In this document: positions 1,741 to 19,963 of the stretch, in pieces
How the letters are laid out: each line of letters begins with the position of its first letter
Numbering within the stretch: the first letter of the stretch is position 1
Virus record (IMG/VR): IMGVR_UViG_3300014911_000574
Span: 1 to 19,963 of that record
Direction: 5' to 3' (one strand)
Length of the DNA stretch: 19,963 nt
Translations under genes and position numbers: made by a program
The notes under the pieces: model-generated
What the model saw: the letters and a program-made list of their open reading frames with translations, nothing else
What the model was told of the DNA's origin: nothing
The model's database searches: none

Positions 1741-2520
1741 TTACTGATGTAGATGGTCTATAATCCATCTATATACGTCTATGGTCTTTCTAGGTAATTC
1801 TCTTGTGTTTGAAACTACAAGACCATCTCTAACATGAACATGTTGTTTAACACCATGAGCAATAACTTCCTCGAAATCACTTGAAAATCCATGATCTGAC
1901 AATACAATCCAGTACTTAGGCTTTGAAAGAGTTATGAGTTCTCTAGCAAATTTAAAGGCCTTGTTATACCAGTAAAAGGCCTTTCTAAGACATTCCTCAT
2001 TATGTAGTGTTTGAAAGAAATGGTGATGTGCTTGATCAGGGATTGGATACCATACAATGAACAAATCCCATTCTTTCACTATATTCCTAATGACAATCTC
2101 ATGAAATCTATCTACAATACTTTCAAAATTGTCTTTAAGAGGTAACCATGCATCTACCCAATTCATTCCATAGAGATCAACATTGATATTAACAGTAGGT
2201 ATTTTTACTGGAACGTTCAAGATCTTAACCTTAAAACCATGTTCAATAGCAATATCCCAAACATACTTACCCTTGTAATCGCCTAAGATAGAGCATGGTT
2301 TGTCAAGTGTTTTAAATCCAAAAACACCATGTTCATTACTGTACTTTCCAGTGAAAAAATTATGTAGTATCGTCGGTGTTATTGGTATATCATCGATGTA
2401 AAGCATATTCCTATGAAAGTTATGGAAAAACCATTTTACATTATCCATATACCAGAGAAATAAATTACAGAAAACAAATGACGCACCATCTAGGATAATT
2501 ACAAGAACTTTATGACTCAT
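1741..2520 (-). CDS. Alkaline phosphatase superfamily protein (nucleotide pyrophosphatase/phosphodiesterase-like)
   Basis: Motifs KVLVIILDGA, PITP..HNFFTG..SNEHGVFGF, PDQAHH, VLSDHGF and a late His; no signal peptide. Confidence 0.85.
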   Translation of the reverse strand: MSHKVLVIILDGASFVFCNLFLWYMDNVKWFFHNFHRNMLYIDDIPITPTILHNFFTGKYSNEHGVFGFKTLDKPCSILGDYKGKYVWDIAIEHGFKVKILNVPVKIPTVNINVDLYGMNWVDAWLPLKDNFESIVDRFHEIVIRNIVKEWDLFIVWYPIPDQAHHHFFQTLHNEECLRKAFYWYNKAFKFARELITLSKPKYWIVLSDHGFSSDFEEVIAHGVKQHVHVRDGLVVSNTRELPRKTIDVYRWIIDHLHQ

Positions 2521-2548: not shown

Positions 2549-2704
2549 TCATGGATACAATCTTACGATATTAAGAAAATGATCGATCATTTCCTCTATA
2601 TTCAATATTAACTTCATTATCAAGGAGATACACCATAATGCAAAGATGATAGTAATGATAAATGTGATAGTTATTAAAAGTAGTGAAGCGACAAGATTTT
2701 CCAT
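2549..2704 (-). CDS. Small TM protein (51 aa), absent from the ORF track
   Basis: Manual translation MENLVASLLLITITFIITIIFALWCISLIMKLILNIEEMIDHFLNIVRLYP; fills the operon gap 5 nt after the upstream stop. Confidence 0.55.
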   Translation of the reverse strand: MENLVASLLLITITFIITIIFALWCISLIMKLILNIEEMIDHFLNIVRLYP

Positions 2705-2709
2705 GAAAA

Positions 2710-3279
2710 TTACCACTCAAACCTAAAGATGTAGGTTATCGTAACAGTTTGACCAGTAGTTACATGAACAGGACTTGGTAGTACATCTCTAGCTAGTAGG
2801 AAATACCTCAAGTAGCCACTGTTATTTTGAGCTCTTATTGTTAATCCAATTTCGTTAATATCCATTTCTGTATTTACTGTTATAGATCCTGAAATGGCAA
2901 CTTCGATATAATTATCACCGTAGATAATGTTTATTGTTTTTACATATTCCCTTTTTACAAGATTTTCTAATTTATAATCAGTTGGTTTGGGAGGTGAAGT
3001 TCCAGTCCCAATTTCAATATACCCCTCGTAACATTCTTCATAACAAAAGTTATAACCTGAATATCCTATGATTAAAGTTTCGCTAGACCCTCCATATTCG
3101 ATGAAATTAGCGTAATTTTTTGTATTTAACTCTTCTGTTCCTACGAGAATCATTGCGAGAAGTTTTGCGAAGTTTAACGTTAATGCATCACCTTGCTTTT
3201 CTATTCTTTTCAAGACCTTTCCATCTCTATCCTTCGTCTCAATGACAACTCTATAACATGACTTTGATTTAACTTTCAT
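2710..3279 (-). CDS. Putative beta-rich virion/fibre-attachment protein
   Basis: Pattern IEIGTGTSPP.PTDY.L ... INEIGL ... LLARDVLPSPV.V...QTVTITY resembles tail-fibre N-terminal/collar domains of phage and archaeal virus structural proteins. Confidence 0.6.
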   Translation of the reverse strand: MKVKSKSCYRVVIETKDRDGKVLKRIEKQGDALTLNFAKLLAMILVGTEELNTKNYANFIEYGGSSETLIIGYSGYNFCYEECYEGYIEIGTGTSPPKPTDYKLENLVKREYVKTINIIYGDNYIEVAISGSITVNTEMDINEIGLTIRAQNNSGYLRYFLLARDVLPSPVHVTTGQTVTITYIFRFEW

Positions 3280-3288
3280 GGTCTATCC

Positions 3289-3762
3289 CTAACTCACTGT
3301 TATTTGATAGCTTACCTTACATATATTTTTACTTGTAGCTACCGACTTTGGAGGTTCTGTAACAGTGTAACTTATTTTACATGTCTTTACCTCATATGCA
3401 AGTGTTATTATCTTGATAATCTCAAAGACTTGTTTTAAAACATCGATGATATCCCTAATTGTTTTTGTTGAATCTACAAGTAAGTTATGATCATCTGTTA
3501 TAACATAGTCTCCATATTCTACATATCTTAGCTTACTTATTATATTGTCAAGTGTCTTCAATAGATCATCAAGTTTTGAATCGATGGAAACCCCCCATTC
3601 CCTTGCTTTCTCTCTAATACAGTTTAATATATTCCTTATTGTTTTTATACAATCAACAAGCAGGTTGTGGTCTTCTGGTAAGATGTAGTCTTCCTTGGTA
3701 ACATACCTTAGCTTTGCCATGATGTTGTTCAACGTTTTAATTAGATCTTCGAGATTTGACAT
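3289..3762 (-). CDS. Putative structural protein with internal 60-aa duplication
   Basis: LEDLIKTLNNIMAKLRYV..DYI..DHNLLVD repeated at a 180-bp period (3521 vs 3701). Confidence 0.7.
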   Translation of the reverse strand: MSNLEDLIKTLNNIMAKLRYVTKEDYILPEDHNLLVDCIKTIRNILNCIREKAREWGVSIDSKLDDLLKTLDNIISKLRYVEYGDYVITDDHNLLVDSTKTIRDIIDVLKQVFEIIKIITLAYEVKTCKISYTVTEPPKSVATSKNICKVSYQITVS

Positions 3763-3763
3763 G

Positions 3764-4309
3764 TTACTTCACCTTTTTGAATAAGATCCAAAATGTAGCG
3801 TTTATAAGACCATTTGCAACATGTTCTAGGCCTATCAACCTACACAATCTCTTTAAACAATTTGGGTGTAATGTGTGATAGTGAGATTCATCTCCATTGT
3901 ATGCGCAACGATCATAGCAAATAACAGATTGTATGAATAACAATCCGTTTTTCCTCAATACTCGATGACACTCCTTCAGACAACGTACGTAATCTAGTAT
4001 ATGCTCTAATGTCTCAAGCATGACAATGAGATCAAAGTAATTGTCTCGAAATGGGAGTTGATCACCAGATCCTAGAACGTCAGGATTTACATCATACTTC
4101 ACAACATCAAGTCCAACATAAAGTCCCTTGAAATTCCATTCTCTCAATGTTCTTTCCAAAAGCCTATTATGACAACCAATTTCCAAGATCTTAAATGGTT
4201 TATATTGATCGATGATTTGTTTTAATTCGTTTCGAGCTATCAAGATAAGTCCCCAACCGTGTTTCTTAGATTCCTCATGTAACATCTTGGAAAGTTCATG
4301 ATACTTCAT
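3764..4309 (-). CDS. Class I SAM-dependent methyltransferase
   Basis: KILEIGC motif I, YVGLDV, LPFRDNYFDLI...LEH, RVLRKNGLL. Confidence 0.9.
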   Translation of the reverse strand: MKYHELSKMLHEESKKHGWGLILIARNELKQIIDQYKPFKILEIGCHNRLLERTLREWNFKGLYVGLDVVKYDVNPDVLGSGDQLPFRDNYFDLIVMLETLEHILDYVRCLKECHRVLRKNGLLFIQSVICYDRCAYNGDESHYHTLHPNCLKRLCRLIGLEHVANGLINATFWILFKKVK

Positions 4310-5358
4310 GATATACCCTCGAGAAAACCGTACTTGTCAAGTATATCAACAAGTTTTTCAACGATTTTAGACCAGTGGTAATTCTCGATAATGTACTTTC
4401 TTATTCTTGCAAATCTTTCCTTGTACTCTTTTATATGGTCGATCACATGTATTAACTTTTCAATCGCATCATTAACATCGATTTCAAATCCATAACCTAC
4501 ATGTACTGGATTGTCATTGTAAACCTTGACTTTCCTAGCAACCTTAATTAAAACACTATCTTTTGCATAGTCAATCCAAGATCCTTGCTCTGGAACTAGA
4601 ACTACAAGGCCCCTCGCTAATGCTTCTAAGACATTAAGTTCAAAACCACCGCCTCTCGAGAAGCAAAGTAAAATATCACATGAATCGTAAAGATCTACAA
4701 GATCTTTCTCACTTAAAAAACCATTGACTTCAATATGTCTTAACCTTTTGAGTAGCATGTAGTGATACCCACATGGATTCCATGTTTTTAAGACAAGTAT
4801 AGTGTCTGGTCTTTTCCTTTGTACATACCTCATAACTTCAAAGACAAGATCCGCTCCTTTTCTTTCCCCTGAATGCCATAGGAAGAAAAGGACTTTAACA
4901 CCATTTGCAAGTCTTACCCTCATGATATCTGGATTTGTTGGAAAGTTCTTAGGCCTAACAAATTCATCATCTATACCATGAGGTAAAACCTCGATATTGG
5001 TTTTAACACCAGATTCTTGAAATACCTTTTTAGCAAATGTCGATGGGACTATAACAAGATCGAACATGTTGATAATATTTACTGCATATTCAGATATTCG
5101 ATCACTATCTGCAACCTCAAAACCCCCCAGCTTGTTTGAGCATTTCCTCAATCTTTCAGGATCTATGAACTTTGAAATGATGGGATACATTATTGGGTGA
5201 ATCAAAAAATTGTGTTTTACAGACCATAAGATCCTAGACCATTCTTTTTCATCAATGTCATACACATTCACATAGCGTCTCAAGTACTTGAGATGCTTCT
5301 CCGCTATTACTGTAAATGAAACAACATGCCACTTAGGATATACATAAAACAATGCCAT
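4306..5358 (-). CDS. GT-B (GT4-like) glycosyltransferase
   Basis: VIVPS.F, VLPHGID, ERKG.D, SRGGGFELNVLEALARG. Confidence 0.9.
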   Translation of the reverse strand: MALFYVYPKWHVVSFTVIAEKHLKYLRRYVNVYDIDEKEWSRILWSVKHNFLIHPIMYPIISKFIDPERLRKCSNKLGGFEVADSDRISEYAVNIINMFDLVIVPSTFAKKVFQESGVKTNIEVLPHGIDDEFVRPKNFPTNPDIMRVRLANGVKVLFFLWHSGERKGADLVFEVMRYVQRKRPDTILVLKTWNPCGYHYMLLKRLRHIEVNGFLSEKDLVDLYDSCDILLCFSRGGGFELNVLEALARGLVVLVPEQGSWIDYAKDSVLIKVARKVKVYNDNPVHVGYGFEIDVNDAIEKLIHVIDHIKEYKERFARIRKYIIENYHWSKIVEKLVDILDKYGFLEGIS

Positions 5359-5360
5359 GA

Positions 5361-6203
5361 CTATGCTTCAAAGATATTGTAAATAGCAACTGTTACTTTT
5401 GTTGATGGTGAAACTCTTACATTTACTTTGTCATTCTTCATAACTGTAAAGTCAAATTCCTTCCATGCATTTCTTGGAATTAACCTTCCCTCATTGAGTA
5501 ATGATATTACTTCTTGCGTCAATCCTGCAGGAATCCACTTGAGGTAACCATAGAAATCACGATCACCAGTAATTTTGATCCTAACCTTACCATCACCTTG
5601 AACTACAAGATCACTCTCGAATATATCGATAAACTCTGGAGCGTAGTAATCAACCATTAGGCCTAGCAACTTAGGTTTTTTTTCATCTATTAGTGTCTCT
5701 AGCCTTGTCTCTATATCACTAAGTCTTGAGTAAATATCTGCAAGACTATACCCTGCATATATCGATTCGATCTTTTCACTAACTTCAACTATCCTACCTT
5801 CTATTTGAGACAATGGAATATCGAATAACGTTAATCTTGATGTGTATTGTGTAATGTATGCATAGTCAATAGCCTCTGTAATCCTTACCCTAGCTTCATG
5901 ATATAGATCTGCAATGTAAATTGGATCTCCATCTTTCAAAACTCTCTTTCCAGAGATGAAACAATCATACGTGAAGTAACCATAGCCTGAATGAACTTCC
6001 TTAATCCTAGCATTTGGATTTCCTACCAAATATGCAATGTCTTTGTCAGGGATTATATCTCCAACAAGGTAACCATATGAAAAGACAGTTTGTATTCCAG
6101 ATACTCTATTATGAAGATCATCGAGAGCATCAACTACCAACTGGCCCCATCTTGTTTTTATCACTTCTCCAGATCGAGGCTTCCATAGGCCGTAGTACGA
6201 CAT
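5361..6203 (-). CDS. Putative fibre/receptor-binding protein (280 aa)
   Basis: GDIIPDKDIAYLVGNPNARIKEVH matches the GxIxPxxDxxYxxGxxxxRxxxIY fibre motif; central coiled coil; beta-rich C-terminus; SD GGTGA. Confidence 0.6.
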   Translation of the reverse strand: MSYYGLWKPRSGEVIKTRWGQLVVDALDDLHNRVSGIQTVFSYGYLVGDIIPDKDIAYLVGNPNARIKEVHSGYGYFTYDCFISGKRVLKDGDPIYIADLYHEARVRITEAIDYAYITQYTSRLTLFDIPLSQIEGRIVEVSEKIESIYAGYSLADIYSRLSDIETRLETLIDEKKPKLLGLMVDYYAPEFIDIFESDLVVQGDGKVRIKITGDRDFYGYLKWIPAGLTQEVISLLNEGRLIPRNAWKEFDFTVMKNDKVNVRVSPSTKVTVAIYNIFEA

Positions 6204-6212
6204 TTTATCACC

Positions 6213-9200
6213 TTATCTCCTCCTTACTCTATACTCTCTAATACGTTTTCTTTCTTTTCTAGCAAGGATGTACTGCATTTTCTCCATAATCATTTCATCA
6301 GTCATTCCCATTTCCTTTAGAGCCTCCTTGTATTCTTCTGGTGTAATGAGGTTGTACTCAAGCAATAGATCGAGAGTTCTCTCTCTCAAGTATCTAACGT
6401 ATGATTCACGTCTAAACTTTGCATGCAACATTCTAAGTTCAACCTCGACTGGTGTATAACCTAGTTTTGTCAATATGTCTTTCAATGTTTGATCTGTTAA
6501 GTAGCCTTTCGCGTAAGCATCAACTAGATCGTAGAAGATCCTCTCTCTTTCGTCTCGAATAGGCCTTACCTTGAAGACCTGCTTTACAATCTTCTTTTCA
6601 TCTTCTGGTAGACCTAGCTGCTCAAGTTTCTTCTGTATGAATTCTTCAGGAATTGGAACGTAATCTGCATAGCTTAACAATGTTCCTAACGTCAAGGTGT
6701 AGGCCTTACCTTCAGCCTCAAGCAGCATTTTTGCAATATCTTCTGGAACTCCTATTTTCTTCATTCCCTCGATAAACTCACGGTCTGTAATCTTTCCTCT
6801 ACGATACATTCTAATCAATGCTCTATAGATGATGTCTCTCAAGTACAGTGTTCTCGATATCTTAGCGAACGTTATTAGCAATTCAATTTCTTCTGGTCTC
6901 AATGCAAGGCCTTCTAAAGCCTTCTTGATTTCGTCATCAGTCAAAATTCCTTTCTCGTAGGCTTCAAGTAATGCTCCAATGATTCTCCTTCTTTCGTCTC
7001 TAAGAGGCTTGATCTTAAATACTTTCAAAACAATCGCTATTTCATCTTCTGGAAGTCCCAATTGTCTCAATTTCTTAAGTAGGAATTCCTCAGGTATTGC
7101 TATGTAATCTGCATAGTGTAACAATGCGGATAATGACAATGTATATGTCTTAGCTTCTGCATCAAGTATTTTCTTTGCAAGATCCTCTGGAATTCCAATT
7201 CGTCTCATTTCATTTATGAACTGTTCATCAGTTATCTTACCTCTCTGGTATAGCCTAATCAATGTTCTATATGTTAGATCTCTTAGGTATAATGTTCTTG
7301 ATAATTTAGCAAATGACATTAGCAATTCAATTTCTCCTGGTCTCAATGCTAATGCATTTAATTCAGACTTCAATTCTTCATCTCCCAAAAGACCTTTCTC
7401 ATAAGCTTCAATTAAGGCCCAAATTGTCTTTCTCCTTTCGTCTCTCAAAGGCTTGATCTTGAATACCTGCAAGACAATTTGCTTTTCATCATCTGGTAGG
7501 CCTAGTTGATCAAGCTTTTTAACTATGAATTCCTCTGGTATTGCCACATAGTCTGCATAATGCAACAATGCGCTTAACGATAAGGTGTATGTCTTAGCTT
7601 CTGCATCAAGCAATAACTTAGCGAGATTCTCTGGAATTCCTATTTCCCTCATTTTATCGATAAATTCCTGATCAGTAATCTTACCTCTTTGATACAATCT
7701 AATCAATGCTCTATAGGTAATCCTACGTAGATACAATGTTCTTTTTATCCTAGCAAATTCCTTAATGAGCTTTATTTCTTCTTGTCTTAAATCAAGAGCC
7801 TTAAGTTGATCTTCAAGATCTCTCTCTGTTATAAGTCCTTGCTCATACATTTCAATCAAGGCCCAAACCATTCTCCTTCTTTCATCTCTAAGAGGCTTGA
7901 TCTTCAATACCTCTTTGATTATTTTCTTGTCTTCCTCAGGAACTCCTAAGAATGTCAATTTAGCTTCAATGTAATCCTCTGGAAGTTCAATGTAATCTGC
8001 AAAAGATAGTATGTAACCTATCGATAGCTCATAATGGGGAGCATTTGCTTCACACACGAATTTTGCAAGTTCCTCTGGATATCCAAGCTTTTTCATTTCT
8101 TCTATGAATTGTTCTTTCGTTATTGCTCCGCGTCTTAGAGCAACAACTAAGGCCCTAACCTTTTCCCTTGCTATATACCTTTCACGTCTAATCTTTACAT
8201 ACTCCTTAATTGCATTAAGTTCGTAATCAGAAAGATAGATGATCGAGTCTTTAAACGTGTGCTCTCTAATTCCCTCGAACAAATGCTCTCTATACTTTAC
8301 TTCAACCATCGATGCTTCACTTATCTTCTTGAAGTAATCTGGTATATGTTCTGGATCGATAAGGCCCATCTCTGCAAGCTCAATAAGACCATAAACGATA
8401 CGTCTAGTTTCATCTCGCAATGGCCTTCTAAGTATTGAGAATATTGTTTGCTTTGCATCCTCGCTTGTAAATCCCCATATCTGTAATTTCGAACTTAGCC
8501 ATTGAGGATCTGGAAATACTGTATCATAGATCCTGTATAGATCGAATAGTCTCAAATCGAAGTAAAGATGTTGCGTGATTTTCTTTACAAAGTCATCACT
8601 ATATCCCTGTGCTTTAAACCATTTAATATATTCATTGAGATCGATAATGTCTTTACAGTACATTATGAACAAGTCTTTATACGATGGTATTGGTCTTGAA
8701 GCTTCAATTATCAGTTCATACTGTTCTTTCCCAAATCCGTGAAATCCAAAGTATCGATCGAGATCTTCCGCTTTGATCAATCCTCTCCAGTAAGCATTGA
8801 TTACAGTTGATGTGTCGATTATTCTTGGTCTGTATTGGTAGTTTATGACATACTGCATTGGTGTTAATATTGCTGCTGTAATGAATGCGCTTGAGATTCC
8901 GCTTACTATTGCGTCAAATTGAAAGACCTTGCTCACAAATGATTTTACACCGTCAAGTCTAACTCCAGTTCCTGCTATAGTTATTGAAGCTAAATCTAGC
9001 ATCATGTAAGTATTTAATGCAACAAATCCAAACCTTATGAGAATGTCAAATACTGCAGTCAATATTTCCTCGATTGATGTTCCCCTCATTTTCTCATGTA
9101 TTGACTTTGCAATACCTGAAAATGCTTCCAACATTGTCTTGAAAATTGTCTTGACAAGGTTAGTAATTTGTTCTACAATCCATATAAATGCTTGGTATAT

Positions 9201-10709
9201 CATTGAAGTAAATGTTTGAAGTCCTGTGAAAAACCACTTTCCAATGTTCATAAAGAAGTCATAAACTTGCTTTCCCAATGCTAAGAACGATTCAACAATC
9301 ATTCTCGGAAGATTACTTACCATTCTAGGTAAGTCCTGTGTAAGCCACTTCCATGTATTTTGCAGTGTTTCCCAAATTTTTAACAATGGATTGATGAATC
9401 CTTCCAAGAACTTACCTATGACTTGCAATTGCTGGTATACACCTTCAATTGACTTTTTAATGAACTCACCAAGCCCTATAATAGAATCGATAATCCATCT
9501 TCCAAACTCACTTATCATTGTTGGAAATTGAGCTATCGTTCTTGCTAAATTCTCGAAAAACCTCTTTATCGTTTCAAATCCTGCAGTTATTGTTTGTGCT
9601 ATTTGTGTAAAGAATGCTTGTATTCCTTGGAATGCAGATGTTATAGCATTGATAATACTTTGAAATGCAGATGACAAGGCTTGATGTAACTGAGCAAATA
9701 ATGTAGATAATGTTCTACCAATATTTTCAAAGAACGTTACAACTTGACTAAAGAATCCTTGTATGGAAGCTACAACATTTTGAAATGCAGTACTAATAAA
9801 TTGCTGGATTTGAGTAAAGAATGTCGATAATGTTCTTGCTATATTCTCAAAGAAAGTCATTACTTGACTAAAGAAACCTTGAAGTCCAGTCCAAAGTTGT
9901 TGAAATGCAGATGTTATGAACTGACTAATTTGTGTAAACAATGTAGATATTGTAGTTGCTATGTTTTGGAAGAAAGTCATTATTTGACTTACAATACCTT
10001 GGAAGAAATTCATCACGTTTTGAAATGCAGATGTAATGAATTGTTGAATTTGTGTAAAGAATGACGCTAGATTTCGACCTATCTGTTCAAAGAATGACAC
10101 TACCTGAGCAAATGCATTTTGTATTGAAGCTACAATACCTTGTAGAAAGCTCATTATCCTATTCGCGATCTCACTAAACAATGTTTGTAGTCCTTGAATT
10201 CCCTTTACTATCCAGTCAATGAATGTTCTTACGCCTGAAATTACACTATTGACTATTGTCTGAGCTGTTTGTGTAAGGTAATTGTAAACCGTTTGAAATG
10301 CAGATACTACGGCTTCCTGAATTACAGTACCAATTTGTGCTAAGGCCCTACCTATTTCCTCGAAAAACTTTGGGACTTGTTGTAATACATTCCAAATTTG
10401 ATCTAGAAATCCTGTTATTCCTCGATATACACCATCGATAATAGTTCTAAACGTTGAAACTAGTGAATCCCAACCAGATTTTAGGAAGTCATAAATTTGA
10501 TTTCTTACAGTTGTTATGAAACTCCAAATTTGGTCCCACAACCATGAAAAAGCTTTACTGATCTGTTCCCACAACCATCTAATTAGTTGGCCTAATGGAT
10601 CTGTAATACCTCCTATTTCCCATTGCTTTAGAGTATCAGGAATGAGTTCGAGCTTGAATTCCTCAAGTTTAAACTCAAGGTCTAATACCTTAATCGTTAT
10701 TTGAGACAT
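6213..10709 (-). CDS. Large repeat-rich virion protein (1498 aa); terminal fibre / tape-measure-like
   Basis: N-terminal amphipathic 40-aa repeats, central hydrophobic segment, C-terminal 148-aa repeats; largest gene, next to other structural genes, analogous to the large rudiviral fibre protein. Confidence 0.75.
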   Translation of the reverse strand: MSQITIKVLDLEFKLEEFKLELIPDTLKQWEIGGITDPLGQLIRWLWEQISKAFSWLWDQIWSFITTVRNQIYDFLKSGWDSLVSTFRTIIDGVYRGITGFLDQIWNVLQQVPKFFEEIGRALAQIGTVIQEAVVSAFQTVYNYLTQTAQTIVNSVISGVRTFIDWIVKGIQGLQTLFSEIANRIMSFLQGIVASIQNAFAQVVSFFEQIGRNLASFFTQIQQFITSAFQNVMNFFQGIVSQIMTFFQNIATTISTLFTQISQFITSAFQQLWTGLQGFFSQVMTFFENIARTLSTFFTQIQQFISTAFQNVVASIQGFFSQVVTFFENIGRTLSTLFAQLHQALSSAFQSIINAITSAFQGIQAFFTQIAQTITAGFETIKRFFENLARTIAQFPTMISEFGRWIIDSIIGLGEFIKKSIEGVYQQLQVIGKFLEGFINPLLKIWETLQNTWKWLTQDLPRMVSNLPRMIVESFLALGKQVYDFFMNIGKWFFTGLQTFTSMIYQAFIWIVEQITNLVKTIFKTMLEAFSGIAKSIHEKMRGTSIEEILTAVFDILIRFGFVALNTYMMLDLASITIAGTGVRLDGVKSFVSKVFQFDAIVSGISSAFITAAILTPMQYVINYQYRPRIIDTSTVINAYWRGLIKAEDLDRYFGFHGFGKEQYELIIEASRPIPSYKDLFIMYCKDIIDLNEYIKWFKAQGYSDDFVKKITQHLYFDLRLFDLYRIYDTVFPDPQWLSSKLQIWGFTSEDAKQTIFSILRRPLRDETRRIVYGLIELAEMGLIDPEHIPDYFKKISEASMVEVKYREHLFEGIREHTFKDSIIYLSDYELNAIKEYVKIRRERYIAREKVRALVVALRRGAITKEQFIEEMKKLGYPEELAKFVCEANAPHYELSIGYILSFADYIELPEDYIEAKLTFLGVPEEDKKIIKEVLKIKPLRDERRRMVWALIEMYEQGLITERDLEDQLKALDLRQEEIKLIKEFARIKRTLYLRRITYRALIRLYQRGKITDQEFIDKMREIGIPENLAKLLLDAEAKTYTLSLSALLHYADYVAIPEEFIVKKLDQLGLPDDEKQIVLQVFKIKPLRDERRKTIWALIEAYEKGLLGDEELKSELNALALRPGEIELLMSFAKLSRTLYLRDLTYRTLIRLYQRGKITDEQFINEMRRIGIPEDLAKKILDAEAKTYTLSLSALLHYADYIAIPEEFLLKKLRQLGLPEDEIAIVLKVFKIKPLRDERRRIIGALLEAYEKGILTDDEIKKALEGLALRPEEIELLITFAKISRTLYLRDIIYRALIRMYRRGKITDREFIEGMKKIGVPEDIAKMLLEAEGKAYTLTLGTLLSYADYVPIPEEFIQKKLEQLGLPEDEKKIVKQVFKVRPIRDERERIFYDLVDAYAKGYLTDQTLKDILTKLGYTPVEVELRMLHAKFRRESYVRYLRERTLDLLLEYNLITPEEYKEALKEMGMTDEMIMEKMQYILARKERKRIREYRVRRR
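6400..8420 (-). repeat. Coding tandem repeat, 444-bp (148-aa) period
   Basis: P[LI]RDE[RT] motif codons near 6547, 6991, 7435 and 7879 (444 apart), plus a longer diverged unit near 8410. Confidence 0.85.
9620..10140 (-). repeat. Coding tandem repeat, 120-bp (40-aa) period, ~4 units
   Basis: TGAAATGCAG at 9661, 9781, 9901 and 10021 (exact 120-bp spacing). Confidence 0.85.
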
Positions 10710-14195: not shown

Positions 14196-14564
14196 ATGCC
14201 ATATAGATCCTACACAATAAGAATCAAGAAATGGAGTTCAAAGTTCGATCCTGATACAGTACGTAACAGATTTGCTCAAGTAAAAGACATTGCAAATGAT
14301 CAAGCTCAAGAACAATTTGCAAGACTAGTAGACTTTGAACAGGCCGTTAAGCATAGACTTAATGAACTTGGAGTTCCAGTAATTCAAATGCCATTTTACC
14401 TAAACGTTGCTCGACAAATCTATAGAGCAATGACAAGACACACAGGAAAGACATTAGAAACTGAAGTCAAGGTTATTAAAGCAACATGGACTGCAAGAGG
14501 ACTAGACCCTGCAATCATCGATGAAATCATCAAGTTAATGATCGGTTACGTCCCAACATATTAA
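14196..14564 (+). CDS. Major capsid protein, SIRV2-type (Adnaviria) fold
   Basis: RSYTIRIKKWSSKF resembles SIRV2 MCP RSYSQRYAKWQAKF; LNELGV...FY.NVARQIYR and GLDPAIIDEI match the helical bundle; monocistronic with a poly-T terminator. Confidence 0.88.
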   Translation: MPYRSYTIRIKKWSSKFDPDTVRNRFAQVKDIANDQAQEQFARLVDFEQAVKHRLNELGVPVIQMPFYLNVARQIYRAMTRHTGKTLETEVKVIKATWTARGLDPAIIDEIIKLMIGYVPTY

Positions 14565-15443: not shown

Positions 15444-15836
15444 GTGATGGATATTCCAAGGTTTAAACGTCAAGCTAAGTACAAGGTAATAAGTGATGAC
15501 AATTTCTGGTTAGAGGATTTAAAGACCATGAACGAAAAGACCATTAAGATTGTAACATTAGCTAAAGTTCCCATCGAGTTTGAAGCTAAGGTGATTGCAG
15601 TCGGGATTTGTGATTTTGGGTCGATGTTCATTTACTTTATGATGAAGAAAGACAATGAAATCATTATGTTCAAATGCTACTACCCAAGAAATGTTGTCGA
15701 ACAAGTCATGAAAGACTTAAACTATGATTCAATAGAGCGTTTTTACGAATGGATAGGAAAGACTATGAAATTCAGAAGAAGACCATATGTTGGATCTCAA
15801 GGTTGTAGGTATTACCCAATCCCAATTTCAAGCTAG
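15444..15836 (+). CDS. Hypothetical protein (130 aa), possibly OB-fold nucleic-acid binding
   Basis: Beta-beta-beta-helix-EWIGKTMKF-beta pattern; the fold is a guess. Confidence 0.65.
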   Translation: MMDIPRFKRQAKYKVISDDNFWLEDLKTMNEKTIKIVTLAKVPIEFEAKVIAVGICDFGSMFIYFMMKKDNEIIMFKCYYPRNVVEQVMKDLNYDSIERFYEWIGKTMKFRRRPYVGSQGCRYYPIPISS

Positions 15837-16172
15837 CATTTTTCTTAGGTCTTTTATAAACTTCATTCTATCCCTTGTAATCCTTATTATTTCCCTTGCT
15901 TGATTCATCATTTCTTTTGCAAAGACAATATCATCACTTTCAAGTCTTTTAATTGCAACATCGATTAGTGATATTGCTCTGTCTAGGTTCATGATCAATT
16001 CATCTATCATTGTATGACGTTTTATCGTCATTATCTTTTTTGCTTTCCATAGGGCCTTGTATATTGTCGATCTTGAACATTTCAATTCTTGCATTATAAG
16101 AGCAATGGAATAACCCTTCTGGTAAAGTTCAACGATTTTTTGCTCTAACTCCGTAAGTCTTACCTCTCTCAT
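15828..16172 (-). CDS. HTH DNA-binding protein with C-terminal coiled coil
   Basis: LTELEQKIVELYQKGYSIALIMQELKCSRSTIYKAL. Confidence 0.8.
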   Translation of the reverse strand: MREVRLTELEQKIVELYQKGYSIALIMQELKCSRSTIYKALWKAKKIMTIKRHTMIDELIMNLDRAISLIDVAIKRLESDDIVFAKEMMNQAREIIRITRDRMKFIKDLRKMLA

Positions 16173-17444: not shown

Positions 17445-18014
17445 ATGTCTCAAGAAAGTCATTTCCACAACATCAACTACTACAACAAGACGATAGGCTT
17501 AACACTACCGAAAAACGTCGTGGAAACGATAAATCATCTTATTACAGAAGGGAGGTTTGCTTCCAGAAAAGAGTTTATTATAAAGGCCATAGAGTATTGG
17601 ATAGAAACTTACATGAAGACAAGCGATGATAAAGAAAGGTTTGCTCAAATTAGGGCTGGTATTCCATCTTTTATCTTTGAAAAAATATCTAAGTTGAATG
17701 TTCAAGACATACACAATTTCGTCTATGATGCAGTAATTTCGTTTCTCGTAAAGTGTCTTAACGACATTATCGATGAACAAAGTAGGATCGTTGAATTGAA
17801 AACAAGACCGAAGATCAGGTATAAACAAGGTGAAAAAAGAGAGATGCAGTTAATAACAGTGCACATGCCAAAATACATTGTTCACATACTTGATGAACTG
17901 GTGAAAGAAGGTCTCTCACCTTCCAGAGCAGAGCTCATTAGAGAAGCAGTGAGGAAATACATTAATGAACGAATTTTCTCAGAAGTTGAAGACATGATCA
18001 TGCTAGGCCCTTAA
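17445..18014 (+). CDS. Multi-domain ribbon-helix-helix (CopG-like) regulator
   Basis: RHH units IGLTLPKNVVETINHLITEGRFASRKEFIIKAI and ITVHMPKYIVHILDELVKEGLSPSRAELIREAV, plus a degenerate middle unit. Confidence 0.88.
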   Translation: MSQESHFHNINYYNKTIGLTLPKNVVETINHLITEGRFASRKEFIIKAIEYWIETYMKTSDDKERFAQIRAGIPSFIFEKISKLNVQDIHNFVYDAVISFLVKCLNDIIDEQSRIVELKTRPKIRYKQGEKREMQLITVHMPKYIVHILDELVKEGLSPSRAELIREAVRKYINERIFSEVEDMIMLGP

Positions 18015-18797: not shown

Positions 18798-19439
18798 TCA
18801 CTTTTTGATCAATTCATCATATTTTTTCCTTAGATCGACAAATCTTTTTACTTGATCTTCATCAACATATCTCGAGTATTTAATGATATACTTCTCAATC
18901 TTTTCAATGGTCTTTCTTATTTTATTGCTCATGTCAATCAACGTTTTGTTCCATACCTTTCCTGAAGCATTCCATTCACTTTCAAATTTTGTTATAAGAT
19001 CATCAAGATCGTCAATCATTTGATCAATAATAATCTTGATAGAGGCTTTTGCTTCCGACTTATGCTTTATCTCCTTAATCTCATGTAGATGTACAATAAC
19101 TGGAGATCCTATTGTTGTTAATGCAGATAATAATTGTGATTGTTCGAATGTTCCTTTCATAATTTCTTCATGGAATAACATGTTGATAGCAATGATATGT
19201 CTCAAATATGCAGAAACTGAAATTCCCTTTTCTTTCGCTATCTTCCTTATCCTATCGTAAAGTTCCTTACTAACTGAAAGTCTAATGCAAGTATGTACTT
19301 TTGGAACTCTTACAAGTCTATAGTATTCCAAGAACTTTTCTCGCAACTTTTCAGTTAAGTTTTTATCCTGAGAATATATTGTATTCTCTCGATCCTGCAT
19401 TAAGGCCCCCCGCTCGCGCGTTTTTTCTTTTCCTTTCAT
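18798..19439 (-). CDS. RHH-domain protein with C-terminal helical bundle; alternative start 19400
   Basis: IRLSVSKELYDRIRKIAKEKGISVSAYLRHII. Confidence 0.8.
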   Translation of the reverse strand: MKGKEKTRERGALMQDRENTIYSQDKNLTEKLREKFLEYYRLVRVPKVHTCIRLSVSKELYDRIRKIAKEKGISVSAYLRHIIAINMLFHEEIMKGTFEQSQLLSALTTIGSPVIVHLHEIKEIKHKSEAKASIKIIIDQMIDDLDDLITKFESEWNASGKVWNKTLIDMSNKIRKTIEKIEKYIIKYSRYVDEDQVKRFVDLRKKYDELIKK

Positions 19440-19545: not shown

Positions 19546-19833
19546 ATGATAGCTCTAAAAACACAAATCTTGATTCTATACTTTTCATTGATTGCAATAT
19601 TCTTTTATCACCTTATAAAAATGCTTGATACTGTTAATGACTTTTATTACATTATGACAATGATTTTAGGATATGTAGGATTAGCATTTTCACCACTGCT
19701 TGTTTTTGTTCTTGACCTTGTTGGTCTATTAGAATATGCTAGAAATTACATGTTAGCGTTTTCGACATTTACACTAACTGTCACATTAATCTATGAAGTA
19801 AAAAAGAAAAGAAAAAGCAACGACTTCAAATGA
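19546..19833 (+). CDS. Membrane protein (95 aa, ~3 TM)
   Basis: Three hydrophobic segments and a basic C-tail; BRE/TATA AAAAAGCATATAAATA at ~19500-19515. Confidence 0.75.
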   Translation: MIALKTQILILYFSLIAIFFYHLIKMLDTVNDFYYIMTMILGYVGLAFSPLLVFVLDLVGLLEYARNYMLAFSTFTLTVTLIYEVKKKRKSNDFK

Positions 19834-19840
19834 AATTCAA

Positions 19841-19963
19841 TTTGTATTTTATTTTATTTATTTGTTTTGTTTGGTTATTTTAACTGTGTCATTCTTCATT
19901 TTTTGTTTTGAGACTTTATGTTCATGTGTTTAAGACTTTTTTCTTAACGCCCCGTGGGGTTAA
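19841..19963 (-). repeat. Right inverted terminal repeat (123 bp)
   Basis: Exact reverse complement of 1..123. Confidence 0.97.

Follow-up and report, generated by a model that had tools for sequence, protein, structure and literature searches.

The virus record IMGVR_UViG_3300014911_000574 of IMG/VR (19,963 bp, analysed here over its full length and referred to as the window) carries, 1.6 kb inside its left inverted terminal repeat, a gene for a 259-aa protein, P0001, which is a minimal enzyme of the nucleotide pyrophosphatase/phosphodiesterase (NPP) type within the alkaline-phosphatase (AP) superfamily. P0001 has the sequence signature and the fold of its family together with an intact catalytic set, it is highly conserved among related viruses, and its gene is linked to those of a glycosyltransferase (GT) and a methyltransferase (MT). 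We propose, with a rough probability of 0.4, that P0001 serves a module for virion-glycan modification as an accessory two-metal phosphodiesterase/pyrophosphatase. The role is read from gene neighbourhoods; the enzyme would be active in the cytoplasm, and the class of its substrate as well as its link to glycans would follow from the company that its gene keeps.

Reading frame, family and fold of P0001

The gene is located as follows:

1741-2520, minus strand: minimal NPP-type (PF01663) AP-superfamily enzyme P0001, 259 aa (open reading frame, Pfam, invariant residues, ENPP1 alignment and structure model)

This span is open on the minus strand only, the plus strand being full of stops, and the standard genetic code suffices for the window. 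A public gene call, P0002 (221 aa, starting at Met39), was rejected since it would lose D11, the first of the metal ligands. Homologues keep residues 1-38, which makes 2520 the right start.

P0001 matches the Pfam family PF01663 (Phosphodiest) with an E-value of 2e-11 and 44.5 bits (gathering cut-off 23), residues 6-214 aligning to positions 2-223 of the 342 in the profile, and the same domain is carried by all 14 close homologues. An AlphaFold2 model based on an alignment with these 14 homologues has a mean pLDDT of 93.6 and a pTM of 0.93. In an exhaustive structural comparison with VIA-align, the five best matches are NPPs, namely: ENPP7 (Z 19.6), the Xanthomonas (Xac) NPP (19.5), ENPP4 (19.2), ENPP6 (19.0) and ENPP1 (18.4), with 233-242 aligned residues and root-mean-square deviations of 3.2-3.4. 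The best Foldseek matches are likewise all NPPs. The next matches, at Z 15-18, are to sulfatases, iPGM, alkaline phosphatases, PhnA and MCR-1/EptA, the sulfatases scoring only 1-2 Z units below the NPPs. Since these enzymes score so close behind, the structural signal is mostly that of the superfamily core, with a modest preference for NPPs. That preference is supported, at the level of sequence, by a 32-sequence family profile which, when compared with solved structures, matches snake-venom phosphodiesterase (4e-9), ENPP1 (2.5e-8) and Xac NPP (2.4e-5), as well as ENPP3, ENPP4, ENPP7 and ENPP6, and ranks the NPPs ahead of PhnA and iPGM. Solved NPPs are reached by this widened profile alone, as phmmer and the close-family profile gave only chance matches against the sequences of the PDB. 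P0001 has no match in PHROGs, NCBIfam or PADLOC.

Two other branches of the superfamily were considered and rejected. A sulfatase (PF00884) assignment is contradicted by the nucleophile segment, P-I-T-P-T, which does not contain the C/S-x-P-x-R formylglycine motif, and P0001 has no match to PF00884. A phospho-substituent transferase of the EptA/MCR-1 or LtaS type would be expected to have a multi-pass membrane domain, which P0001 does not have, and such entries rank lower in the structural comparison (Z 15.3-15.8).

A catalytic core with all six metal ligands

In a profile alignment to ENPP1, D11 corresponds to D218, T48 to the nucleophile T256, D162 to D376, H166 to H380, and D209/H210 to D423/H424. 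The sixth metal ligand is H229, which aligns to the last metal-binding His of iPGM in a profile of the C-terminal part (E 0.004). The distance from the DH pair to H229 is 19 residues, a spacing like that of iPGM, compared to about 110 residues in NPPs. H222, within an 'AHG' sequence, was considered as a metal ligand and rejected, as it is not conserved. The codons of the catalytic residues, all on the minus strand, are:

2490-2488: D11
2379-2377: T48
2037-2035: D162
2025-2023: H166
1896-1894: D209
1893-1891: H210
1836-1834: H229

All seven residues are invariant in the 14 close relatives. In the wider set of 32 sequences the ligands remain invariant and the nucleophile column contains only T or S. 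T48 itself is found in a P-x-T motif ahead of a TG...HG segment. In the model, the first beta-strand begins at residue 5 and D11 is located right behind it, in the first loop. Nothing cleavable thus precedes the catalytic core, and P0001 has no signal peptide; the hydrophobic N-terminus that could suggest one forms the core elements beta1 and alpha1 in the model.

An earlier note, made from the letters of this DNA alone, had described a minimal NPP/AP-superfamily enzyme of 259 aa without a signal peptide, in which the metal ligands and the Thr nucleophile look intact. This description agrees in every part with the PF01663 match above cut-off, the confident model and its NPP matches, the start of the core at residue 5, and the invariance of the six ligands and T48. 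Judging from its family, fold and catalytic set, P0001 is apparently an active two-metal, Thr-nucleophile enzyme of phosphoryl or nucleotidyl transfer.

The iPGM-like spacing and the C-terminal alignment to iPGM, as well as the JGI name of distant relatives, 'AlkP superfamily phosphohydrolase/phosphomutase', could point to a sugar-phosphate phosphomutase or phosphomonoesterase that, like phosphopentomutase or iPGM, feeds or trims sugar phosphates. However, P0001 consists of 259 aa of core only and has no counterpart of the inserted cap (transferase) domain of iPGM and phosphopentomutase, which the known AP-superfamily mutases need. The structural match to iPGM spans 206-209 residues of chains of 520-549 residues, and NPPs score above mutases by both sequence and structure. 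We therefore regard a mutase or monoesterase as very improbable.

The rudivirus-like genome and the distribution of the gene

The window is a complete virus record whose ends are inverted terminal repeats, and the record itself is classed as having such repeats. The features that bear on the class of the virus are:

1-123, with partner 19841-19963: left inverted terminal repeat, 123 nt, 100% complementary
14196-14564, plus strand: rudivirus-type major coat protein, 122 aa (PF12193, Sulf_coat_C, E 4.4e-10, 40.2 bits against a cut-off of 25.2)

The match of the coat protein to PF12193 fixes the virus class. In addition, Pfam and tblastn identify two GT4-family GTs in the window with 30-35% identity to GTs of cultured rudiviruses. 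Given the inverted terminal repeats, the coat protein, these rudivirus-like GT4s and a tape-measure-like protein (see below), the window is a divergent rudivirus-like genome.

A word search with P0001 retrieved 14 proteins of 232-268 aa with 48-76% identity, all of them metagenomic. With an exhaustive profile search the number of relatives rose to 1,865, of which only nine representatives have E-values of 1e-30 or lower. A gap in E-values from 1e-33 to 1e-19 separates this viral clade from the others, and from 1e-19 on there are other core-only proteins (240-340 aa) along with many of 450-560 aa. In a scan of JGI metagenomes, 23 loci were found in a handful of samples, the window itself (contig Ga0180301_10001252) being one of them; a scan of IMG/VR with the close family gave a single locus, L018, and the same database gave no match with the tailed-virus group A5. 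The gene is kept in an uncultured rudivirus-like clade known from about 20 metagenomic loci.

Outside this clade, neither megablast with the whole window nor tblastn with P0001 gave a match among 50,697 phage and archaeal-virus records, and tblastn with the distant homologue P0029 also found none. The family profile did not find the gene in the cultured rudiviruses MRV1, ARV2 and SIRV2, while it recovered the positive control, gene 29 of Haloarcula hispanica tailed virus 1 (HHTV-1). The earlier note had placed the gene in a filamentous archaeal virus and had doubted that it is a standard gene of this virus class; the terminal repeat, the coat protein and the rudivirus-like GT4s bear out the former, the tblastn and profile results the latter. 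A literature search on rudivirus phosphodiesterases, on PF01663/COG1524 in viruses and on HHTV-1 found no publication on this protein.

Within the clade, P0001 is the best-conserved protein when the window is compared with its relatives: it is 60-62% identical to its counterparts in L002, L006 and L008, as opposed to 39% for the coat protein, 37-43% for the GTs, 31-38% for a 280-aa protein, 35-54% for the MT and 23-24% for the tape-measure-like protein. Invariant residues that are specific to the viral clade are R37, D43, E63-H64, H140, W157-Y158-P159, Q163, H165, W184-Y185, E217 and R231-D232. The minimal form is not unique to these viruses, as it is shared by clusters of archaeal and bacterial proteins in the ESM Atlas and by HHTV-1 gene 29. 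Within PF01663, the viral clade adds a new branch to a core-only subfamily that is known but uncharacterised.

Gene neighbourhood in the window and across the clade

In the window, the NPP gene comes last in a minus-strand string with the order tape-measure-like, p280, GT_a, MT, p157, p189, small hydrophobic open reading frame (ORF) and NPP. Listed from the NPP end, its surroundings, all on the minus strand, are:

1712-1733: hairpin with a stem of 8-9 bp just past the NPP stop (folding energy -9 kcal/mol; weak, with a z-score of only -1.7)
2549-2716: short ORF with a hydrophobic product of about 52-55 aa that precedes NPP by 28 nt; no family match
2710-3279: p189, 189 aa, weakly tail-fibre-like (phrog_5417, E 5.8e-5; phrog_4176, tail fibre, 3.5e-3)
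3289-3762: p157, 157 aa, with two copies of a motif of about 40 aa (alignment A6)
3764-4309: class I S-adenosylmethionine (SAM)-dependent methyltransferase, MT (PF08241, E 4.9e-14; PF13489, 1.9e-11), with a 4-nt overlap with GT_a
4306-5358: GT4-family glycosyltransferase, GT_a (PF00534, PF13692; phrog_2170, E 6e-52)
5361-10709: 280-aa protein (p280) and tape-measure-like minor structural protein of 1498 aa; both precede GT_a in the string

From GT_a to NPP the intergenic gaps range from -7 to +28 nt, and from this spacing it is plausible that NPP is co-operonic with the GT and the MT. The hairpin is followed by about 250 nt without an ORF and, judged by its sequence, may mark the end of the transcription unit. 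In tblastn searches, GT_a matches proteins of ARV1/2/3, SBRV1, MRV1 and the SIRVs with 30-35% identity. The motif of p157 has an invariant L, I, R, V, GD, DHN and D. In seven relatives (L029, L030, L032, L036, L037, L039 and L042) it is a conserved N-terminus attached to unrelated, variable C-terminal domains (138-512 aa), and because exchangeable fibre or receptor-binding proteins are built in this way, p157 is suggested to be a fibre or adhesin. A p157-like gene lies directly downstream of NPP in seven distinct related loci and is the most constant neighbour of NPP; homologues of p189 adjoin the module in L018 and L042. p280 and the 1498-aa protein are syntenic in L002, L006, L013, L018 and L042. 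The latter (6213-10709) resembles phage tape-measure proteins in its N-terminal part, with PHROG matches from 1e-27, and probably corresponds to the large minor structural protein known from rudiviruses. In its C-terminal half, reading the translation by eye shows a unit of about 130-140 aa repeated four or five times in tandem.

Homologues of the module genes were mapped in all related loci, 15 of which are distinct and informative. In 11 of the 15, GT_a and/or MT are at most 2 kb from NPP, and in 12 at most 3 kb, counts that come from related viruses and not from independent events. At least eight gene orders around NPP occur among them:

Window: GT-MT-p157-p189-x-NPP
L032: GT-NPP-MT, with 4-nt overlaps
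L042: GT-MT-NPP-p157-p189
L018: MT-x-NPP-GT
L013 and L044: MT(-)/NPP(+)/GT(-)
L006 and L028: GT-x-NPP...MT(-)
L002 and L029: GT-MT-x(-)-NPP
L035: GT-MT(-)-NPP

With so many gene orders, NPP is seen to lie inside the module, between the GT/MT and the fibre-like genes, and not just at its distal edge.

Distant homologues with independent contexts (23-25% identity) were also examined. On an archaeal contig (L022) the NPP-like gene closes the series radical SAM-radical SAM-GT4-GT2-radical SAM-x-NPP-like, and on a tailed-virus contig (L021) it follows a GT, a 173-aa MT-like protein and one further gene and precedes a terminase. In an Aenigmarchaeota contig (L020, 2864-6783), it closes a CysD-x-DUF2061-CysN operon, where CysD and CysN each score above their NCBIfam subfamily cut-offs; this operon adjoins genes for PMT_2, an NTP_transferase (sugar nucleotidyltransferase) and a polysaccharide flippase. 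In another archaeon (L014, 8001-9517), the NPP-like gene overlaps a CysD/CysH-like gene, and the ESM Atlas contains fusion proteins of ATP-sulfurylase, PUA_2 and Phosphodiest domains with the same core. This suggests that ATP sulfurylase has a hitherto overlooked partner in the minimal NPP-like proteins of cells, be it a pyrophosphatase, an adenylyl-sulfate-handling enzyme or a sulfotransferase-like enzyme. A link to sulfate activation in the virus itself was rejected, as the window has no PAPS_reduct or CysD gene and the PAPS_reduct pair of the related contig L011 is DndC/PRK08576-like rather than CysD.

The earlier note had supposed that P0001 works with the GT and the MT, as a phospho- or sulfo-substituent transferase or a nucleotide-sugar hydrolase, and had proposed a survey of homologue neighbourhoods for GTs. 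In this survey the GT and/or MT are kept near NPP through many rearrangements and the distant homologues of L021 and L022 also lie beside GTs. As far as gene association goes, this supposition is supported.

Two contigs of the clade differ in their surroundings. L011 (JAMOUI010000044.1, 39,978 bp; region 2574-7118) is Ligamenvirales-like, with a rudivirus-type coat protein and the Holliday-junction resolvase Hjc; its NPP-like gene is near the two paralogous DndC/PRK08576-like genes and a weakly MT-like 254-aa gene, which may form a different modification module. L005/L036 (QMSF01000002.1, identical to Ga0180301_10000627; 27,213 bp) comes from the same sample as the window and was deposited in a metagenome-assembled genome named 'Thermoprotei archaeon'. 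Its NPP gene is 2 kb from the contig end, together with a p157-like fibre gene, Hjc, a lectin-like gene and a MoxR ATPase. No cellular marker genes were found in the 12.9-kb end that was read, which looks viral; either a virus was binned here or the contig gives a hint of the host's lineage.

The presence of the gene among structural and fibre-like genes (tape-measure-like, p280, p157 and p189) could also reflect an enzyme that is packaged with the terminal fibres and cuts a phosphodiester-linked component of the host envelope, such as a lipid head group, a glycan or a pilus modification, at entry or release. A particle assembled in the cytoplasm needs no signal peptide, a capless, core-only enzyme would suit large substrates, the HHTV-1 homologue comes after a tail-tube gene, and the lipid head-group phosphodiesterases ENPP7 and ENPP6 tie for the best structural match. 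The Z-scores of these lipid-specific NPPs, however, are within 1 of those of nucleotide-specific NPPs, while the overlapping GT-NPP-MT frames of L032 and the cytoplasmic biosynthetic operons of the cellular homologues argue for an intracellular role, and we give a virion-borne enzyme a low probability.

Proposed role in virion-glycan modification

An accessory role in glycan or virion modification is favoured because the linkage to GT and MT survives rearrangement, the gene is embedded between these and the fibre genes, and distant relatives are found in biosynthetic contexts. By analogy with the NPP family, one metal would be held by D11, D209 and H210 and would activate T48, which would attack the phosphorus of a phosphodiester or phosphoanhydride. 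A second metal, held by D162, H166 and H229, would stabilise the leaving group, and the covalent Thr intermediate would be resolved by water or by an acceptor hydroxyl. The soluble enzyme would act in the cytoplasm beside the GT4 glycosyltransferase and the SAM-dependent methyltransferase, in a late module that builds and decorates the virion and its terminal fibres. The most probable substrate would be a nucleotide-activated donor or a by-product of glycan modification (a nucleoside diphosphate (NDP)-sugar, an NDP, pyrophosphate or a compound of the adenylyl-sulfate type), and hydrolysis would be the simplest reaction. Less probably, a phospho-substituent might be transferred onto a glycan and then possibly methylated by the MT. 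An analogy is WbdD of E. coli O9a, which makes a methyl-phosphate cap.

Several observations weigh against this proposal. The first group concerns the substrate. The Asn that contacts a phosphoryl oxygen in NPPs (N277 of ENPP1, N111 of Xac NPP) corresponds to the invariant F69, with no conserved Asn nearby, though the local alignment could be shifted. Likewise, the base-clamp Phe of NPPs aligns to P49, and the Tyr region of the clamp aligns poorly. With these two positions replaced, a nucleotide substrate is not to be assumed; conserved aromatics of the W121/W125 type could substitute for the clamp. Furthermore, the minimal core-only subfamily is biochemically uncharacterised. The second group concerns the neighbourhoods. 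Neither GT_a nor MT is near NPP in the clade members L005/L036, L037 and L011, and the homologues of HHTV-1 and L016 have no GT neighbour. In cultured rudiviruses, which do not have the NPP gene, MT and GT adjoin near the genome end; the linkage is hence partly inherited synteny, and GT and MT work without NPP. Finally, the SIRV2 genes just outward of the GT are anti-CRISPRs, so that the position of NPP is compatible with a counter-defence gene.

The substituted clamp bears as well on a role in nucleotide salvage, in which a 5'-nucleotide phosphodiesterase of the snake-venom type would convert host nucleic acids or dinucleotides to 5'-(d)NMPs on which viral replication draws. Among solved structures, the family profile matches snake-venom phosphodiesterase best (4e-9), and the L016 homologue lies among genes for a DNA methylase, a helicase and a PD-(D/E)XK protein. 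With the nucleotide-clamp residues of NPPs not conserved and the gene of the viral clade in a late/structural module instead of with replication genes, such a nuclease is decidedly improbable.

The comparison with SIRV2 bears on the other proposal of the earlier note, that of a counter-defence phosphodiesterase. As a metal-dependent analogue of AcrIII-1, this enzyme would cut the cyclic oligoadenylates or other nucleotide second messengers of type III CRISPR or CBASS-like systems to 5'-AMP. There is a precedent in the PglZ domain of PorX, an AP-superfamily two-zinc domain which cleaves cA3, cA4, cA6 and linear oligoadenylates to AMP in vitro (PMC9757075). Moreover, ENPP1 is among the best matches by fold and sequence, AcrIII-1/DUF1874 (PF08960) is absent from the window and from the L018 record at E-values up to 1, the gene is 1.6 kb from a genome end equivalent to that where SIRV2 keeps its anti-CRISPRs past the GT, and high conservation would suit an invariant small-molecule target. 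On the other hand, P0001 has no PglZ, PADLOC or PHROG anti-defence match, and no Aca-like regulator adjoins its gene. In most relatives the gene is found between GT/MT and fibre genes, sometimes in overlapping frames, and not in a variable terminal block, and the distant homologues are in biosynthetic operons rather than in defence or counter-defence islands. Because the comparative data give no specific pointer to counter-defence, we consider it unlikely. Less probable again is the stronger form, in which P0001 founds a new class of metal-dependent viral anti-CRISPR or anti-signalling enzyme that opens cyclic oligoadenylates to linear form, digests them to 5'-AMP and replaces AcrIII-1 in a rudivirus-like clade without that protein. 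Degradation of cyclic oligoadenylates by P0001, if it occurs, would make it an anti-CRISPR enzyme of a new type.

If, as we favour, P0001 works with the GT4 and the methyltransferase, the module with which rod-shaped archaeal viruses glycosylate their virions, and whose chemistry is little understood, would gain a third activity.

Other features of the genome

About half of the ORFs of the window have no family match. A Holliday-junction resolvase, Rep, a Cas4-like nuclease, a dUTPase and AcrIII-1 were not recognised by Pfam in this 20-kb genome, in contrast to the relatives L005 and L011, in which Hjc is present. Its right arm contains the following:

15828-16172, minus strand; 17445-18014, plus strand; 18798-19439, minus strand: cluster of small DNA-binding proteins
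19546-19833, plus strand: strongly hydrophobic protein of 95 aa that adjoins the right terminal repeat (weak holin-like match to PF16935, E 0.013, below cut-off)

The members of the cluster are a ribbon-helix-helix protein (PF01402, 1.3e-13), an HTH_7 protein and a NikA-like ribbon-helix-helix protein, and they are probably early regulators. The 95-aa protein, whose size and location recall those of the pyramid protein of rudiviruses, is a candidate for a function in egress.

Comparison with known systems

AcrIII-1 (DUF1874, PF08960) resembles P0001 only in the role proposed under counter-defence; its fold is unrelated and its chemistry metal-independent. PglZ, known from BREX and PorX, is closer, being likewise a cytoplasmic AP-superfamily domain with two metals and a Thr nucleophile. 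Nevertheless, its cap subdomain and partner domains are absent from P0001, and P0001 has no PglZ match in Pfam (E up to 0.1), in PADLOC (E up to 1) or among the 50 best structural matches.

With the NPP family (Xanthomonas NPP, ENPP1-7 and snake-venom phosphodiesterase), P0001 shares the alpha/beta core, the Thr nucleophile and five metal ligands that align in sequence. It differs in size (259 aa compared to about 380 aa for the smallest solved NPP domain) and in the shortened stretch between the DH pair and the last His (19 compared to about 110 residues). In addition, characterised NPPs are secreted or ecto-enzymes with a signal peptide or an anchor, whereas P0001 has neither a signal peptide nor accessory domains.

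The closest viral counterpart is HHTV-1 gene 29 (R4T8R0, 'Phosphodiesterase', 249 aa), which belongs to the same minimal family by hhalign (probability 97.1%, E 5.6e-11) and by the family profile (E 6.5e-13), and shares the motifs LDG / T / PDxxxH / SDHG / H. It is also the best fold match to P0001 in BFVD (E 1.2e-8, TM 0.65/0.67) and, like P0001, is virus-borne and encoded in a structural module. However, it is only about 19% identical, is itself uncharacterised, comes from a haloarchaeal tailed virus, and is not linked to P0001 by tblastn. In its genome (L023, KC292025), gene 29 (22013-22762) is annotated as a 'hypothetical protein' in GenBank and has no Pfam match at E-values up to 0.01; it separates the tail-tube gene from the tape-measure region and has no GT or MT neighbour.

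The nearest relatives in form are the minimal PF01663 proteins of archaea and bacteria (about 240-300 aa), named 'Phosphodiesterase of AP superfamily' or 'predicted AlkP superfamily phosphohydrolase/phosphomutase'. They have the same length, core and invariant set (D, T/S, D, H, D, H, H) as P0001, and match it end to end with 20-28% identity and E-values of 1e-19 to 1e-10. ESM Atlas clusters of 257-264 aa from archaea and bacteria score 0.97 by features and reach a TM of 0.79-0.81 by structure. This core-only subfamily is widespread, with no member of known substrate. Several of its cellular members are encoded in CysD/CysN or GT/radical-SAM operons, and the viral member, which is small (259 aa), probably thermostable, highly conserved and found in a sharply defined gene context, offers an entry point to the function of the whole subfamily.

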